DNA of 63,649 nucleotides, the filler included, from Ministeria vibrans ATCC 50519 (Eukaryota; Protista; Filasterea): the NCBI GenBank assembly GCA_943704425.1. It is 8 parts of 8 records of this genome, joined end to end, with 100 filler letters (N's around TTAATTAATTAA, not from the genome) between each part and the next. Parts side by side here need not be neighbours in the genome. Positions count along the whole stretch, not along the records: positions 1 to 8,257 come from CALSCP010000915.1; 7 more parts are not named here. One strand, 5' to 3'. The notes below the pieces were generated by a model, which saw only the letters and a list, made by a program, of their open reading frames with translations, did not search any database and was not told the origin of the DNA. Of the stretch, positions 1 through 8,257 are shown piece by piece. The position numbers and the translations under genes were made by a program. The stretch's first letter is position 1. Each line of letters opens with the position of its first letter.

Positions 1-1123
1 TCATCCTCATCCTCATCCTCATCCTCATCCTCATCAACCACAGTGCTCGTGTAAGTGTCCTGAACAGCAGCGCCAGCACCTCGCATTCCTGGCGGCTTGT
101 CAGAGTTACCGTTTTCGGCGACCGCGACACGAATGAGCCGTTGCGTCAGCAGGTCCAGGTTGCTCGCTTGAGGAAACTCCTTCGCTTTATACCGAGGATC
201 CAGCAGCATGGCAGTGACAAAGAGGTTGTCCTTGAACACCTTGTTCAATGTGTTGTGGCCAGCGTAGTCCTCGTGAGTGCTGAACGAGCCGAAGTAATAG
301 GCGAGCTCGCCAATCACAAGTTTGGCGCAGAGGTCGGCGGCAATGAGCGCGGCGCGATTGGGGGTTGTGGTGGGATTGAAGGTACGTGGCAGTAAATGCT
401 TGCGCACGCCAGTATCAAGCTGAACGAGTGTTGGCAGCAACTGTGACGCCGCCGCATAGCTGGACCCTCTTTCATTGACGGCGTCGAATAAGTGGTCGAT
501 GGGTGCAGTTTGCTGACGAAGCGGTCGAAGAAGCCGCTCTCGATCAGCGCCAGCGGCAGTTTTTCGGCGATGACCAAGTCGATGAGGGAATCATCCACAC
601 TGGTAGCCTCTGTTGGCTTGAACGCGCTTAACTTTAGTTGCAGGCTGGACACGTCAGATCCACGCTTCTGAAGCTAGTCCGGCGGCGTGAGCATCCCACA
701 GACACTTGTAAAGCCGTGGACTTCTTTCAGATGCTTCGAGAAATTACTTTCGGTGGTCTCCTGACGAGCAACACGGCCGACGCGCCCCGTCTGGTTGCGG
801 CAGGGGAGTAGGCGACAACGGTAGAGCTCGTTGCCGGATTTGTTCATAGTGTTCAGGGACACGAACCAGGCGAGAGCATCACTTGTATTACGATTCATTG
901 AAAAAAAAGGTCAAAAAAAAGGTGACACTGTGATCAAATAAATGGCACCAATCGGCAGCTAAGCCGAAGATCGATCGAGATCCGCTGTTACTACAACGAT
1001 AGGATCACTGTGGAGAGCTCCGAACCTTGTCGAATCTTGGCGAACCTTGAGCGGCGCTCGAATATTCGAGGTTCGGAAGATTCGAAGATTCGAAGATTCG
1101 AAGATTCGATTTACCAGGGCCTA
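1..1123 (-). mobile_element. Degenerate, internally deleted hAT-family DNA transposon (left end plus transposase remnants)
   Basis: Minus strand shows a BED zinc finger (AWFV...YRCRLLPC...SNFSKHLKEVHG, 898-720) and an in-frame TAG at 674-676. It continues with a Hermes-type DNA-binding motif (LIDLVIAEKLPLALIESGFFDRFVSKLHP) and the hAT motif TAMLLDPRYK near 215-186. The DDE core between these is missing. A terminus-like TAGGCCCTGGTAAATCGAAT starts at 1123, followed by subterminal (TTCGAAGA)n repeats at about 1072-1108. Confidence 0.75.
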
Positions 1124-1159
1124 AACACCAATCTTTCTCTGTTTCTTTGTCACAAAACC

Positions 1160-4100
1160 ATGTCTTCGCTACAGAAACGCATTCAAGAGGCTCGGATGTC
1201 CCAGTCCTTGAACCTGAGGGAGATGGGGCTCAGTTCTCTCCCGGACGAAATTCTTGTTCTTGCTGACTCTCTACAGGAATTGCTGTTGACATACAACCCG
1301 CTTGGCGTGCTCCCCGACTGGATTGGCCAGTTCAAGAAGCTCAAGGTATGGAAAAGGGGAGAGAAGGGTGAGGGCTTCTCACGGGTCGGCGCTTTTTTTT
1401 TTCGTTCTGGACGAAGCTTCTGGACGTCGGGAAATGCAAGCTCAAGACGCTCCCGGCAGCCATTTTAGAGTTGCGTGAGCACCTGGAGGAGATAACTTAC
1501 TGGGGAAATGAGGGATTCGCGCCATCTCTCGACAATCTCTGTGCAAGTAAGAGGAGATTTTTGGTTGACGAGTGGTAAAACGAAAGATTTGTCTGTAGAA
1601 GGTTTGAGATACCTGGATCCAGTGTATTGATTAATTCTAACTCCTTATCTTGCGCTTCTGGGCGTGGCAATGTTGGGCTGCTCAGTCTGTAAGAAGGCCT
1701 CTTTTTGTATGATTTTCCTAACACTCGCAACTTTTGCAGTCTGTAAGATGTCAAGAATTCAGTGTATTATCTGACACAATTTTTGCTCGATTCGCTGCTC
1801 TGTGCTATTTGGTTTAGGGGGTAAGTTTGAAGAATAGATCGAAATGGATGGTGACTGATTTGGACTGTGATTTGGACTGTTCTTTGCATTGTTTTAGCTG
1901 GTAAGTTTGAAGAATAGATCGAAATGGATGGTTGATTTGGACTGTGATTTGGACTGTTCTTTGCATTGTTTTAGATTGTAAGTTTGAAGAATAGATCGAA
2001 ATGGATGGTGACTGATTTGGACTGTGATTTGGACTGTTCTTTGCACTGTTTTAGATCGTAAGTTTGAAGAATAGATGGAAATGGATGGTGACTGACTTGG
2101 ACTGTGATTTGGACTGTTCTTTGCATTGTTTTAGCTCGTAAGTTTGAAGAATAGATGGAAATGGATGGTGACTGATTTGGACTGTGATTTGGACTGTTCT
2201 TTGCATTGTTTTAGATCGTAAGTTTGAAGAATGGATCGAAATGGATGGTGACTGATTTGGACTGTGATTCGGACTGTTCTTTGCATTGTTTTAGTTGGTA
2301 AGTTTGAAGAATAGATGGAAATGGATGGTGACTGATTTGGACTGTGATTTGGACTGTTCTTTGCATTGTTTTAGGGTGTAAGTTTGAAGAATAGATCGAA
2401 ATGGATGGTGACTGATTTGGACTGTTCTTTGCATTGTTTTAGCTCGTAAGTTTGAAGAATAGATGGAAATGGATGGTGACTGATTTGGACTGTGATTTGG
2501 ACTGTTCTTTGCATTGTTTTAGATCGTAAGTTTGAAGAATGGATCGAAATGGATGGTGACTGATTTGGACTGTGATTTGGACTGTTCTTTGCATTGTTTT
2601 AGTTGGTAAGTTTGAAGAATAGATGGAAATGGATGGTGACTGATTTGGTCTGTGGTTTGGACTGTTCTTTGCATTGTTTTAGTGTGTAAGTTTGAAGAAT
2701 AGATCGAAATGGATGGTGACTGATTTGGACTGTGGTTTGGACTGTTCTTTGCATTGTTTTAGGGTGTAAGTTTGAAGAATAGATGGAAATGGATGTAACT
2801 GATTTGGACTGTGATTTGCGCTCTTCTTTGCATTGTTTTAGCTCGTAAGTTTGAATAATAGATCGAAATGGATGGTGACTGATTTGGACTGTGATTTGGA
2901 CTGTTCTTTGCATTGTTTTAGATTGTAAGTTTGAAGAATAGATGGAAATGGATGGTGACTGATTTGGATTGTGATTTGGACTGTTCTTTGCATTGTTTTA
3001 GGGTGTAAGTTTGAAGAATAGATGGAAATGGATGGTGACTGATTTGGACTGTGATTTGGACTGTTCTTTGCATTGTTTTAGACGGTAAGTTTGAAGAATA
3101 GATGGAAATGGATGGTGACTGATTTGGACTGTGATTTGGACTGTTCTTTGCATTGTTTTAGCTCGTAAGTTTGAAGAATAGATCGAAATGGATGGTGACT
3201 GACTTGGACTGTGATTTGGACTGTTCTTTGCATTGTTTTAGCTCGTAAGTTTGAAGAATAGATGGAAATGGATGGTGACTGACTTGGACTGTGATTTGGA
3301 CTGTTCTTTGCATTGTTTTAGCTGGTAAGTTTGAAGAATAGATGGAAATGGATGGTGACTGACTTGGACTGTGATTTGGACTGTTCTTTGCATTGTTTTA
3401 GCGCGTAAGTTTGAAGAATAGATGGAAATGGATGGTGACTGACTTGGACTGTGATTTGGACTGTTCTTTGCATTGTTTTAGGGTGTAAGTTTGAAGAATA
3501 GATGGAAATGGATGGTGACTGATTTGGACTGTTCTTTGCATTGTTTTAGATTGTAAGTTTGAAGAATAGATCGAAATGGATGGTGACTGATTTGGACTGT
3601 GATTTGGACTCTTCTTTGCATTGTTTTAGACCGTAAGTTTAAAAAATAGATCGAAATGGATGGTGACTGACTTGGACTGTGATTTGGACTGTTCTTTGCA
3701 TTGATTTAGCTGGTAAGTTTGAAGAATAGATGGAAATGGATGGTGACTGACTTGGACTGTGATTTGGACTGTTCTTTGCATTGTTTTAGAGGGTAAGTTT
3801 GAAGAATAGATCGAAATGGATGGTGACTGACTTGGACTGTGATTTGCGCTCTTCTTTGCATTGTTTTAGGGTGTAAGTTTGAAGAATAGATGGAAATGGA
3901 TGGTGACTGACTTGGACTGTGATTTGGACTGTTCTTTGCATTGTTTTAGCTCGTAAGTTTGAAGAATAGATGGAAATGGATGGTGACTGATTTGGACTGT
4001 GATTTGGACTGTTCTTTGCATTGATTTAGCTGGTAAGTTTGAAGAATAGATCGAAATGGATGGTGACTGACTTGGACTGTGGTTTGGACTGTTCTTTGCA

Positions 4101-7100
4101 TTGTTTTAGCTCGTAAGTTTGAAGAATAGATCGAAATGGATGGTGACTGACTTGGACTGTGATTTGGACTGTTCTTTGCATTGATTTAGCTGGTAAGTTT
4201 GAAGAATAGATGGAAATGGATGGTGACTGACTTGGACTGTGATTTGGACTGTTCTTTGCATTGTTTTAGAGGGTAAGTTTGAAGAATAGATCGAAATGGA
4301 TTGTGACTGATTTGGACTGTGATTTGGACTGTTCTTTGCATTGTTTTAGCTGGTAAGTTTGAAGAATAGATCGAAATGGATGGTGACTGACTTGGACTGT
4401 GATTTGCGCTCTTCTTTGCATTGTTTTAGGGTGTAAGTTTGAAGAATAGATCGAAATGGATGGTGACTGATTTGGACTGTGATTTGGACTGTTCTTTGCA
4501 TTGATTTAGCTGGTAAGTTTGAAGAATAGATCGAAATGGATGGTGACTGATTTGGACTGTGATTTGGACTGTTCTTTGCATTGTTTTAGCTGGTAAGTTT
4601 GAAGAATAGATCGAAATGGATGGTGACTGACTTGGACTGTGATTTGCGCTCTTCTTTGCATTGTTTTAGCTCGTAAGTTTGAAGAATAGATCGAAATGGA
4701 TGGTGACTGACTTGGACTGTGATTTGGACTGTTCTTTGCTTTGTTTTAGCTCGTAAGTTTGAAGAATAGATGGAAATGGATGGTGACTGATTTGGACTGT
4801 GATTTGGACTCTTCTTTGCATTGTTTTAGGGGGTAACTAAATGAGAATATTGAGAAATTGTTCGTGACTGATTTTATTTTTAGTTGGTAAGTGCGTTTTT
4901 ACATCAAGCTTGTGACTCCCCTGTACCTCGCAGACCATGCGCGATGGAAGCAGGACACACAGGCGTTCTTTCAGCTTCTCGCGGAAGGAGCTCAAAAGGA
5001 GCAACAGCGATTGGAGCAACAGCGACTGGAGCAACAGCGACTTGAGCAACAGCGACTTGAGCAACAGCGACTGGAGGAAAGAGTGCTTCGTCTCGTTGAG
5101 GTACCACATCAATCCATTGACTCTTCCAAATATCATCTGTTCTAGGAGAACGAAGCCGCGCTGAGTCGGCGACTTCAATTAGAGACGGTAAGTTTTACTT
5201 TTCATTTTCAGCGCGCCCCTTATTGTATCATTTTCAGGAATTGAACGACGCTCAAAAGCTTCTCGAGGTACCTCATCATAGAATCCCTGCCATATTGTGT
5301 TTAAAAATCACATTCAACTTGCACAGTCGGAGCGCCAGGCCAACAATACTCACGCAAAGCTACTGGAGAACGAGCCACCGCTGGTGACGCTCAGTCGCGC
5401 AGCCCATCGACTCGATCAGCTCGTTATGTCCGCCACGGCCGACAGCCTCGTCAGTGCCGATGTTGCGTCGCATCTGGCCGTCCTCCGTTCCCTCTCGCTT
5501 GATCCTCCCACACTGCAACTCCTTGAGCGAGGTCTCGACGAGCCCGATTCGCTCCTTAAAATCTGCGGCGCTGCCGAGGCGGCCCTTCGCACAGCCCAGA
5601 CGGCCTTTGAGGACGCTCCCGCCACTGCCATTGTCAGTGAATCGGACATTGACGAGCGCGACCGTCTTCGAGAGGCATTCATCACCGCTATGGATCGCTT
5701 TCTTGGCGCGCTCGCGTCCACCGACCTGGAGTATCTCCTCTCTGTTGTGCACAACGTCACTGCTACTCTCCCAGCAGCCGCCACAGCCGATACTTCACAC
5801 AATGCTACTCTCACAGCAGCCGCCACAACCGATACTTCACACAATGCTACTCTCCCAGCAGCCGCCACAGCCGATACTTCACACAATGCTACTCTCCCAG
5901 CAGCCGCCACAACCGATATTGCTACTCTCCCAGCAGCCGTCACAGGCGATGACGGCACCACTTCACACAACGTTTCCCTGTCTGCGATGGTGCACACTGC
6001 TGTCACTGCCGTCTCACAGTGGTCCACCGCTATTGACAAGCGCAACAATGACATCACGACTGCCTGTGGCAAGGTGGGCCGCCTCATCAGCGACTTTGGC
6101 AGTCTAGTAGCACAGCGCAAGAGTACCGCCGCCAACGATCAGCATCATTGTGCCGCCTCCCTCGAGCTGCACTCCGCCATCGACGCCATGCGAGACACCA
6201 CATGGCGCTTCCAGATGCAGAATGAGTTTCCTTCTGCCGCCGTTCAGGACGCGGTGCACACTGTTCGAGGTGTTGCTGCCACACTTTGCGCGCGCATTGC
6301 CGAGATCTTCGACGCTCAGGAACGCTACGAGCTGCTTCTCAAGGAGGTGAAGAGAGCACAGGCGCAAGGACCGCCCGAGACGACGACGATCGACGCTTTG
6401 AATGCGACAGTCAAGAAGCTGCGTCGTCGTATGGGGCACGCGAAGGTCGACCTCGAGAGCGAAGACGATCCGGCCGAGCAGGAGATCCTGATCCAAGAGC
6501 TCGCCGAGTTCAAGAAGGAGCTGCAGTCGACGTTGGGCTCGCTCCGTCGCGAGATCTCCCGTGTGGTTATTCTTGCCCAGGGACACTTTCCTGAAGTGTT
6601 GCGCCGAAGCACCGAGCTCGCGCAGTTTGGTAGCGCCATGGTGGGCGGCGAGCTCTTTGCAGAGCGACCGCTCGACGAGTACTTTCAGGAAAGAATTCTG
6701 GCGCGCAAGCCACACATGGTGCGACTCATGTCTTTTGATGGGGAGCTCTGTGTGCTCAAGGAGTTCTCGGTGCACGCTCTGAAGACATTTGTCTCGGAGG
6801 CCAATCGCTTGCGCCGCCTGTGCCACCCTCATGTTGTGTCTGTGGGTGTGTGCTTTGCTCACAAGGATCACGTCTACATGGAGATGCCATTTTATGCGGG
6901 CGGATCACTTCCAACCTGGCTGGAGCGGCTCTCTGGCGGTGGCGTCGAGGTCCCTTCTGCATGCCGTCGCTGGATCATGCGCGAGACTCTGACGGCGATT
7001 GAGGCAAGAAAAATGCCGACGAGAACAATGTGAAATCTGACTATTTGCATGCTTTAGTATGTGCACTCGCAAGGAATCATTCACTGTGACGTGAAGCCTG

Positions 7101-8232
7101 AGAACGTGCTGATGACAAGCGAGTCGGAGCAGGCGCGGGCTGTATTGGCCGACTTTGATGTGAGTCTGGACGTGAGTGGGCGCACAATGACGATGATGAT
7201 GACCGTTGCTGCACCCGCGTCTGGACCGCGAGGCACGATGCAGTTTATGGCGCCCGAGCTCCTCAGCGGCACGCAAGAGCCTACGCCTGCCGTCGACATG
7301 TACTCGTTCGGCGTGACGCTTCTGTGGACCATGACGGGGAAGACGCTTTCAGTGCAGCGAACACTTCCTGTGCTCGCCGACAATGTGTCGCTGATGAGCG
7401 TGCTTCAGACGCTGGTGACCGACGACGCTGCCGGGCGTCCGACTGCTGCTCTCACACTGGCCGCCGACTTCTTCTCGGCGGACGTTTCGCAAGAGACGAT
7501 TGCCCTTGAGCAGCAACAGAGTGAGGCGGCAGTGGCGGCAGAACAAGTTGCTGCGGAGATTCGCGAGCGCCAACAAGTGCTACGCCAAGAGCAGGAGCGT
7601 GTGCAGCGCGCGGCAGAGGAGCAGGCAGCACGCGAGGCTGAGCTTGTGCTCGAACGCGAATCAAGCAAGGCGGAGGACGACGTGGCGCGACGCACATTGC
7701 AGGCACACGAGGCGCAGGTCAAGGAATCGGCTGCGAGGCTGCGCAAAGAGATGCAAGAGGTGCGCAAGGACCGTGAAGCCGTCGAGAAGCTGCAAAAGTC
7801 CGTCAAGGTATGATGGATACTCCACGTCTTTTCTTGTCTCATCTTGTTCTGTAGCATCTGGTGACGCCCCCACTGCACTGGACACTGACAACGCTCGAGC
7901 AACCCATGATGAAGGAGATGGCCGTGAGCAGGGAAGTTCAGGCGGGACTGGAGCGGTTGCTGAACGAAACGGCGGAGGCGGACACACACGGGGTTGGCAG
8001 AGACAGTCATTCTGTTCGCTTTCGGCGTTTCAAGGTGACTCGAGCTACCCGCATCGAGAACCCGCTTCTGTGGCGAACGTACGCTTTGGAGCGACAACGA
8101 GTGGCAGACCAGTGGAAAGGCAAGGGGCAGCTGCAGGTGACGCCAGCTGTACGTACGGACTCGGTGATGTGGGACGGACGTCAGCGACTGATGCAGGAGG
8201 CGGGCGAGCATTACCTCTTCCACGGAACGAGC
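1160..8232 (+). CDS. LRR - microexon-encoded variable segment - coiled coil - non-RD Ser/Thr kinase - PARP catalytic domain protein (3' end cut by contig end)
   Basis: Predicted exons: 1160-1345 and 1417-1546 (LRRs: LNLREMGLSSLPDEI, LLLTYNPLGVLPDWI, LDVGKCKLKTLPAAI); 43 three-nt exons between 1599 and 4886; 4934-5100 (EQQRL repeats); 5146-5187; 5238-5267; 5327-7003 (helical region, CVLKEF, CHPHVV); 7058-7807 (HCDVKPEN, DFD, GTMQFMAPE); 7855-8232 (RIENPLLW, EHYLFHGT). With these splice sites the frame is continuous from the ATG to the contig end. Confidence 0.85.
1818..4832 (+). repeat. Tandem array of about 80-bp units: 38 near-identical 77-nt introns separating 39 variable 3-nt microexons
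   Basis: Unit is NNN|GTAAGTTTGAAGAATAGAT(C/G)GAAATGGATGGTGACTGA(T/C)TTGGACTGTGATTTGGACTGTTCTTTGCATTGTTTTAG. It has a perfect donor, a CTGAY branch site, a pyrimidine-rich tract and an AG acceptor. The triplet between AG and GT takes 12 different values. Confidence 0.9.
4998..5075 (+). repeat. Coding 15-bp tandem repeat (EQQRL x5), coiled coil
   Basis: GAGCAACAGCGACTG/CTT-type unit repeated in the exon directly after the microexon array. Confidence 0.85.
5761..5938 (+). repeat. Coding 42-bp tandem repeat (ATLPAAATADTSHN, about 4 copies)
   Basis: TGCTACTCTCCCAGCAGCCGCCACAGCCGATACTTCACACAA repeated in frame within ORF 5297-7033. Confidence 0.85.
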
Positions 8233-8257
8233 GTAAGGCACAGAAGAAAAACGAATG

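Follow-up and report, generated by a model that had tools for sequence, protein, structure and literature searches.

The window analysed here, 63,649 nucleotides long with filler included, consists of eight parts of eight records of the Ministeria vibrans ATCC 50519 genome assembly (GCA_943704425.1) joined end to end. Its first part, the contig CALSCP010000915.1, carries on the plus strand (1160-8257) a gene, hereafter gene W, in which two leucine-rich repeat (LRR) exons are followed by a series of 42 exons of only three bases each, and then by exons for a coiled-coil-like region and a protein kinase domain (Table 1). Most of the series is a tandem array of near-identical introns. The triplets are real exons, which are spliced into the mRNA and read in phase 1, and comparable arrays occur throughout a family of paralogous genes in the same genome.

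Gene W and the splicing of its microexons

Tandem Repeats Finder detected an 80-base unit in 38 copies (92% matches, 1821 to 4829). The unit is a complete short intron, with a GTAAGT donor, a CTGAT branch-like motif, a T-rich tract and a TAG acceptor, plus three bases. A scan for AG-NNN-GTAA recovered 40 triplets at 1818-4884, and two TCT triplets upstream (1686 and 1740) with unrelated introns; all 42 sit between AG and GTAAG or GTAAC, the canonical acceptor and donor contexts. A direct duplication of 12 bases (TGATTTGGACTG) was observed in the array introns, for example at 1856-1880, and both 65-base introns (2378-2442 and 3485-3549) are without one of its copies but are otherwise placed like the others. 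RNA folding gave no special structure for the intron unit (z -1.3), for a stretch across a microexon (-0.5) or for the unit of the related 88-base family described below (+0.4).

Contigs, not raw reads, of four public runs (X1, X2, X6 and X19) were aligned to positions 1100-5400; such contigs drop rare isoforms, and transcript ends and levels are not readable from them. X1 and X2, which belong to different studies, skip the GT..AG introns 5188-5237 and 5268-5326 and therefore represent RNA, whereas X19 retains both introns, covers every bin, and is therefore DNA. In both X1 and X2, the contig that matches the genome from 4933 on has 17 foreign letters before it, and these letters are the microexons at 4510, 4590, 4670, 4750 and 4830 and the start of that at 4884, in genomic order. 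A second X2 contig carries a retained intron and the triplet 4510-4512, then the next five triplets, and finally the downstream exon from 4934 on. Six of the 42 microexons were thus seen joined, in order, in two independent runs, as the sequence-only reading of this DNA had proposed for the triplets. The depth of X2 is 0 in most array bins, as opposed to 300-1200 on the exons.

Further contigs caught the series at other points. The RNA contigs stop at 1345, at the end of exon 1, and those of X1 and X2 align exactly to 1464-1546 in exon 2 before continuing for 27 and 63 letters unlike the genome. RNA joints leave the first microexon at 1688 in X2 and X6. The X2 joint from 1688 to 1742 corresponds to the first two microexons fused, although it probably comes from the C2596 paralog, as its letters read TTT. 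The loose ends of X1 include nine consecutive microexons of the paralogous array C73a, eight of a C2647-like array that end at a retained GTAAGT, and three of C43 flanked by retained introns, and three-letter insertions in further contigs are the neighbour pairs TTG-GGT and CTC-ATC between retained introns. Microexon runs flanked by retained introns are therefore partly spliced intermediates, which indicates that the introns are removed singly and in no fixed order. No junction between non-adjacent microexons was found in the contigs of the three RNA runs, which have little power for rare isoforms.

The frame of the microexons is fixed from both sides. Exon 2 ends one base into a codon. On the other side, the junctions 5100/5146, 5187/5238 and 5267/5327 are set by X1 and X2 contigs and, given the frame from 5327, the exon 4934-5100 must start with two codon-completing bases. 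Phase 1 on both sides of the array, which the earlier reading had assumed, is thus confirmed, and the frame is kept on skipping, every microexon being three bases in phase 1. A phase-0 reading of the triplets is open, but both flanks fix phase 1; a phase-2 reading contains stops and is excluded by the flanks as well. An acceptor at 4908 would give phase 0, but the intron would then measure a mere 22 bases, and the RNA match begins at 4934. As a separate observation, each array (1686-4886 in gene W, and L031-L038 among the paralogs) is stop-free in phase 0 and spells a Leu/Ile/Gly-rich, membrane-segment-like string, probably a by-product of base bias.

The microexons contribute about 42 of the more than 1,100 residues of the product, which has LRR and kinase domains and no evident signal peptide. 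Domains were searched exon by exon. Protein homology searches with exon 5327-7003 and with exon 2 were blank, a result of little weight given the length window of the search. For the last visible exon (7855-8257), no match was found in a Pfam or PDB sequence search, and we do not claim the PARP-like identity suspected from a short motif. The 3' end of the gene lies beyond the contig end at 8257. The intron 7004-7057 begins with GC and would be of the GC-AG type, as the kinase profile continues from 111 to 113 across the gap.

Table 1. Exons, microexons and introns of gene W, numbered along the window
Feature	Position	Strand	Description and evidence
Exon 1	1160..1345	+	ATG at 1160; leucine-rich repeat, open frame with weak LRR_1/LRR_8 Pfam matches; ends in phase 0
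Exon 2	1417..1546	+	LRR-like; its end falls after the first base of a codon (phase 1); 77-93% identity to paralogs
First microexon TCT	1686..1688	+	AG/GTAAG context; preceded by a 139-base non-repeat intron
Second microexon TCT	1740..1742	+	Splice context; paralog comparison
Repeat array	1818..4832	+	39 three-base microexons and 38 near-identical introns (34 of 77, 2 of 65, 1 of 74 and 1 of 76 bases)
Penultimate intron, 51 bases	4833..4883	+	Akin to the 5' half of the array intron (alignment); removed in X1 and X2 contigs
Last microexon TTG	4884..4886	+	Conserved in all paralogs; its letters precede 4934 in X1 and X2 loose ends
Last intron of the series, 47 bases	4887..4933	+	Non-repeat; RNA match begins at 4933/4934, with microexon letters before it
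Downstream exon, 167 bases	4934..5100	+	Opens with two codon-completing bases (phase 1); contains the conserved D-H-A-R-W-K stretch and E-Q-Q-R-L five times
Exon, 42 bases	5146..5187	+	RNA loose ends at 5101/5144; joint 5186-5237 in X1 and X2
Exon, 30 bases	5238..5267	+	GT..AG joints in X1 and X2
Long exon	5327..7003	+	559-codon open frame; last 75 residues are a protein kinase N-lobe (Pkinase profile positions 43-111)
Kinase catalytic-loop exon	7058..7807	+	Pkinase E 6e-20, profile from position 113; coiled-coil-like tail; borders predicted from frame and profile continuity
Last visible exon	7855..8257	+	Open frame; cut by the contig end

Paralogous arrays and probable turnover of the unit

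The unit was searched across the 29.7-Mb assembly, in which two of the paralogous arrays contain gaps. Arrays of the 80-base type were found on contigs C43, C73 and C2647, and related arrays of an 88-89-base type on C1260, C1049, C312, C1600 and at the other end of C73. At least six further loci share exons 1 and 2 (77-93% amino-acid identity; 79-89% to six paralogs for exon 1) together with the first and last microexons. A TTT or TCT homologue of the first microexon stands at the matching place in all paralogs. In six loci the series begins with TTT or TCT, continues with TTT, ACT or ATT and then GGx, and ends with TTG (mostly TTG TTG). A homologous phase-1 downstream exon is common to the paralogs with 3'-complete arrays, while the C-terminal parts of the paralogs, except C43, are unrelated to gene W. 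The number of microexons ranges from 12 (C1049) to 44 (C43).

A strict pattern for two successive microexons occurs at 135 places in the genome (two for a reversed control), and among the 100 of these 135 places that were listed, all but one, a simple repeat, lie in arrays of the gene W family. A metagenome scan for the intron core gave no match. The copy on C312 (L036, C312:7792-8849, minus strand) is without the upstream LRR exons and has an abrupt boundary with the unrelated sequence before it. Two GAT triplets in a row give it a phase-1 stop, which no other copy has, and it is probably a truncated pseudo-copy. We also noticed that the 5' module, which comprises two LRR exons, the array and the exon with the W-K stretch, is fused to unrelated 3' parts in C73 (L033), C1260 (L035), C1049 (L038) and C312 (L036), and that these parts include open frames of 558 and 709 residues without a Pfam match. 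Contig C73 carries two array genes in tandem.

Several features suggest that units are gained, lost and exchanged at the DNA level. Within the array of gene W, the mean diversity per site is 0.034 in the introns and 0.69, 0.53 and 0.67 at the three exon positions. A block of four units occurs twice (2135-2375 and 2443-2683), as does a block made of CTG, an intron and AGG. The unit would derive from a resident intron, as its 5' half is similar to the penultimate intron. Between gene W and C43, with 42 and 44 microexons, respectively, the order of the triplets is unrelated and there is no positional homology inside the arrays, whereas the flanking exons and introns are 84-96% identical; the array-intron consensus is 98.7% identical between the two and the exons 89-92%. 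In addition, X6 represents a relative that is 90-95% alike and is spliced at 5101; in its contig only 55 letters separate 1688 from 4938, against 126 + 4 in gene W. Unless this contig comes from a paralog, the relative has a shorter array, with about 18 microexons in all. In the same X6 RNA contig (1588-1688 + 4938-4990), the intron before the first microexon is retained while the whole array is already spliced.

Encoded segment and competing explanations

The intact arrays are all open in phase 1, and the product of their random-order probabilities is about 0.035. In all copies the encoded segment begins with I-[F/Y]-W and ends with V-[V/D] before D/G-[H/R]-A-[R/Q]-W-K, and phase 1 is the only reading in which the change between TCT and TTT in the first microexon is synonymous. 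We pooled seven arrays (170 residues) and compared their composition with that of the ordinary exons of gene W. The segments are rich in Trp (9.4% versus 1.1%), Tyr (6.5% versus 1.0%), Phe (5.9% versus 2.6%), Gly (12.9% versus 4.1%) and Pro (7.6% versus 3.5%), and poor in Leu (1.8% versus 12%), Lys and Gln. Aromatic residues make up 22% of the pooled segments, compared with 4.7% of the ordinary exons, and Cys and Met are absent from the 170 residues. The composition is consistent across independent arrays. The richness in aromatic residues, which had been put forward for the codons reachable by skipping, therefore holds for the constitutive product itself. Selection on the spliced product is supported by the conserved ends, the open phase 1 and the TCT/TTT change; the avoidance of stops, from which the sequence-only reading had argued for it, failed as evidence (see below).

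A different kind of constraint appears at the middle base of each microexon, a synonymous position in phase 1. In the arrays of gene W (1818-4832), C43, C73, C2647, C1260 and C1049, this base is A in only 5 of 177 cases and often T, which sets it apart from ordinary third positions (P 3e-20; 4e-7 if every distinct pair of neighbours enters the count a single time). No NAG microexon, which would create a tandem acceptor, was found among these arrays. An A-poor and T-rich synonymous base points to a constraint acting at the RNA level.

Taken together, we consider it quite probable that the series is a constitutively spliced run of 42 three-base exons in an LRR/coiled-coil/protein-kinase gene, which grows and shrinks at the DNA level. 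The 80-base unit combines one short intron with one phase-1 triplet, exactly one codon long, so that gain or loss of units in the DNA never shifts the frame after splicing. Unequal crossing-over or slippage between the near-identical introns would let the array grow, shrink and be reshuffled. Each intron would be removed alone by intron definition, with no fixed order, and neighbouring triplets would fuse stepwise. The product may be a linker that joins the N-terminal LRR cap to the remaining protein, evolves fast, varies in length and is of low complexity, with Trp, Tyr, Phe, Gly and Pro in abundance. So far, the diversity is seen between gene copies and between strains rather than among transcripts.

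Some of our results weigh against this explanation. Apart from the six microexons joined in order and two ambiguous pairs, 36 of the 42 were assigned as exons by their context, and contigs cannot show rare isoforms, so that constitutive inclusion of every exon is no more than probable. Moreover, diversity is about 18-fold higher at the triplet sites than at the intron sites, although plain unequal crossing-over should homogenise both, and the array-intron consensus is better conserved between paralogs than the exons are. Extra selection, either for triplet diversity or on the intron sequence, would have to be assumed to account for this.

The sequence-only reading had instead taken the array for a combinatorial generator, in which transcripts skip varying subsets of microexons, hybrid codons arise at the new junctions, and the composition has been selected against stops. 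Any subset of microexons does keep the frame; with the same splice signals on all introns, it is mechanically plausible that a donor pairs with an acceptor further downstream; and no single-exon skip in the array of gene W gives a stop. The counts behind the proposal were also reproduced. Third bases of the 40 array microexons are G in 16, C in 14 and T in 10 exons and never A, while the first two bases are only GG, CT, AT, TT, TG, AC, CG or AG, so none begins with GA or AA. The 24 reachable codons stand for 14 residues plus TAG, the sole reachable stop (T+AG), and both AGG exons (3790 and 4270) follow CTG even though ten array exons end in T. Nevertheless, we regard this proposal as improbable, because the counts do not bear out an avoidance of stops. 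Among the 820 non-adjacent pairs, the two TCT exons included, 21 (2.6%) would make a stop, 17 of them among the 40 array exons alone and all of them TAG. When the ordinary exons of gene W were cut into phase-1 triplets and taken in windows of 42, the stop rate was 1.9% on average (median 1.5%), and the array, at the 73rd percentile, is not below it. Randomising the order of the triplets, a check that had been suggested along with the proposal, left 51% of the orders without an adjacent stop (P = 0.51), and a lone exon starting with AG follows a non-T exon in about 70% of cases by chance. The two CTG-AGG cases had been counted separately; both blocks have the same intron haplotype and therefore represent one duplication. 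The make-up of paralogous arrays, which had been named as what could speak against the proposal, does so: GGA, CGA, AGA, ACA, AAT and GAT occur there, i.e., exons ending in A or starting with AA or GA, and the rates of stop-making skip junctions are 0, 0, 1.3, 3.3 and 11%. The composition rules are a local trait of two closely related arrays. Finally, all junctions seen in the contigs of the three RNA runs join neighbours. Stop-free exon mixing by design is not supported.

It is about equally improbable that the peptide is incidental, i.e., that the array is a self-propagating intron minisatellite, or that a load of 42 introns in 3.2 kb slows or gates expression, the array being tolerated since it encodes a disordered linker. 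The higher conservation of the array introns than of the exons between paralogs, the freely varying length of the arrays, and partly spliced intermediates abundant enough to assemble would all agree with such a view, as would the strong bias of the synonymous middle base against A and towards T, a constraint at the RNA rather than the protein level. However, the amino-acid composition is consistent across independent arrays, the ends of the peptide are conserved in phase 1, and all intact copies preserve the open frame, which the truncated one on C312 has lost. A minisatellite inside one long intron (1547-4933), whose triplets never enter the mRNA, is almost certainly not the explanation. Skipping of the whole array would keep the frame as well, both sides being in phase 1, but microexon letters continue directly into the downstream exon in contigs of two studies, and no contig of the aligned runs joins 1546 straight to 4934. 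It is tempting to consider a diversification at two levels, in which the turnover of units in the DNA, providing every gene copy and strain with a linker of its own, would be combined with stochastic skipping of exons at the RNA level through the identical splice signals, so that a single gene would yield a population of aromatic-rich linker variants with new junction codons. We find this unlikely, but if it were true, gene W would hold a eukaryotic device for protein diversity built from the smallest possible exons. Correcting the idea of stop-free mixing keeps the focus on the counting of isoforms.

Relation to known systems

If units turn over as we propose, the array resembles coding minisatellites (VNTR-type repeats of linkers and mucin-like regions), in which unequal exchange alters the length of a low-complexity segment while the frame is kept. 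In those repeats the whole unit is exonic, whereas 77 of the 80 bases of the gene W unit are intron; as 80 is not a multiple of 3, gene W keeps its frame only in the spliced product. In algae and fungi, near-identical introns that have spread through a genome are known as introner elements. Gene W shares with them the many near-identical spliceosomal introns in one genome, but introners are dispersed in unrelated genes, whereas the copies in question, among the pattern matches listed, are in tandem and at the same place of the gene. The unit and pattern searches match mainly tandem arrays of one gene family, plus a few short matches on other contigs. In the long introns of Drosophila, recursive splicing proceeds through ratchet points, zero-length exons of the form AG/GTAAGT. 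An acceptor beside a strong GTAAGT donor is common to these sites and to gene W, so neighbouring sites would not be occupied at once and removal would be stepwise. Unlike ratchet points, which contribute no letters to the mRNA and exist for the removal of a single long intron, gene W has short introns and keeps three bases per step, three letters per site being present in the RNA.

To our knowledge, exons of three bases are at the lower practical limit of exon recognition and are known only in isolation or in small numbers. In gene W, about forty of them follow one another in tandem, each coupled to a complete 77-base intron of its own, and are correctly joined according to the RNA data. The array is therefore a natural test bed for a spliceosome that meets an acceptor three bases away from a donor. 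How introns stay more uniform than the surrounding exons is a question that the locus poses, and the locus would illustrate how the copying of introns lets a gene change the length of a protein segment. Standard gene prediction will break genes of this type.

No published description of a tandem array of three-base exons was found in searches of the full-text literature, which yielded only isolated microexons, plant clusters and the micro-exon genes (MEGs) of Schistosoma. Isolated three-base microexons of animals and plants, such as that of RPS24 (PMC12207440), are recognised and included by the spliceosome, and plant microexons can form small clusters (PMC8831610). Unlike the exons of gene W, these are isolated or in clusters of few, are conserved in sequence, and lie among ordinary, unrelated introns, with no array of dozens. 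The MEGs, with exons of 3-81 bp among long introns and secreted products (PMC10526429), appear to be the closest known system. MEGs and gene W have in common runs of very short, frame-symmetric exons in one gene, and a product segment that is short, disordered and variable. However, the exons of MEGs are mostly 6-36 bases long, the introns are long (up to 5 kb) and unrelated, the proteins are secreted, and alternative splicing is documented. In gene W, all exons of the series are three bases long, the 77-base introns are tandem copies, and the product has a kinase domain and no evident signal peptide, rather than being a secreted protein encoded almost wholly by micro-exons. As to alternative use of the microexons, only junctions between neighbours were seen in the contigs, which drop rare variants.

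A few minor features of the contig may be added. No Pfam match was obtained for minus-strand open reading frames at 3-673, and a few words are shared with a seawater metatranscriptome. In-frame coding repeats also occur in ordinary exons of gene W, namely a 15-base unit in 5.3 copies (E-Q-Q-R-L) at 4998-5076 and a 42-base unit in 3.8 copies at 5761-5918. The contig opens with a TCATCC hexamer repeat (1-35), and an 8-base repeat, TCGAAGAT, is present in 6.5 copies at 1021-1109, just upstream of the start codon.

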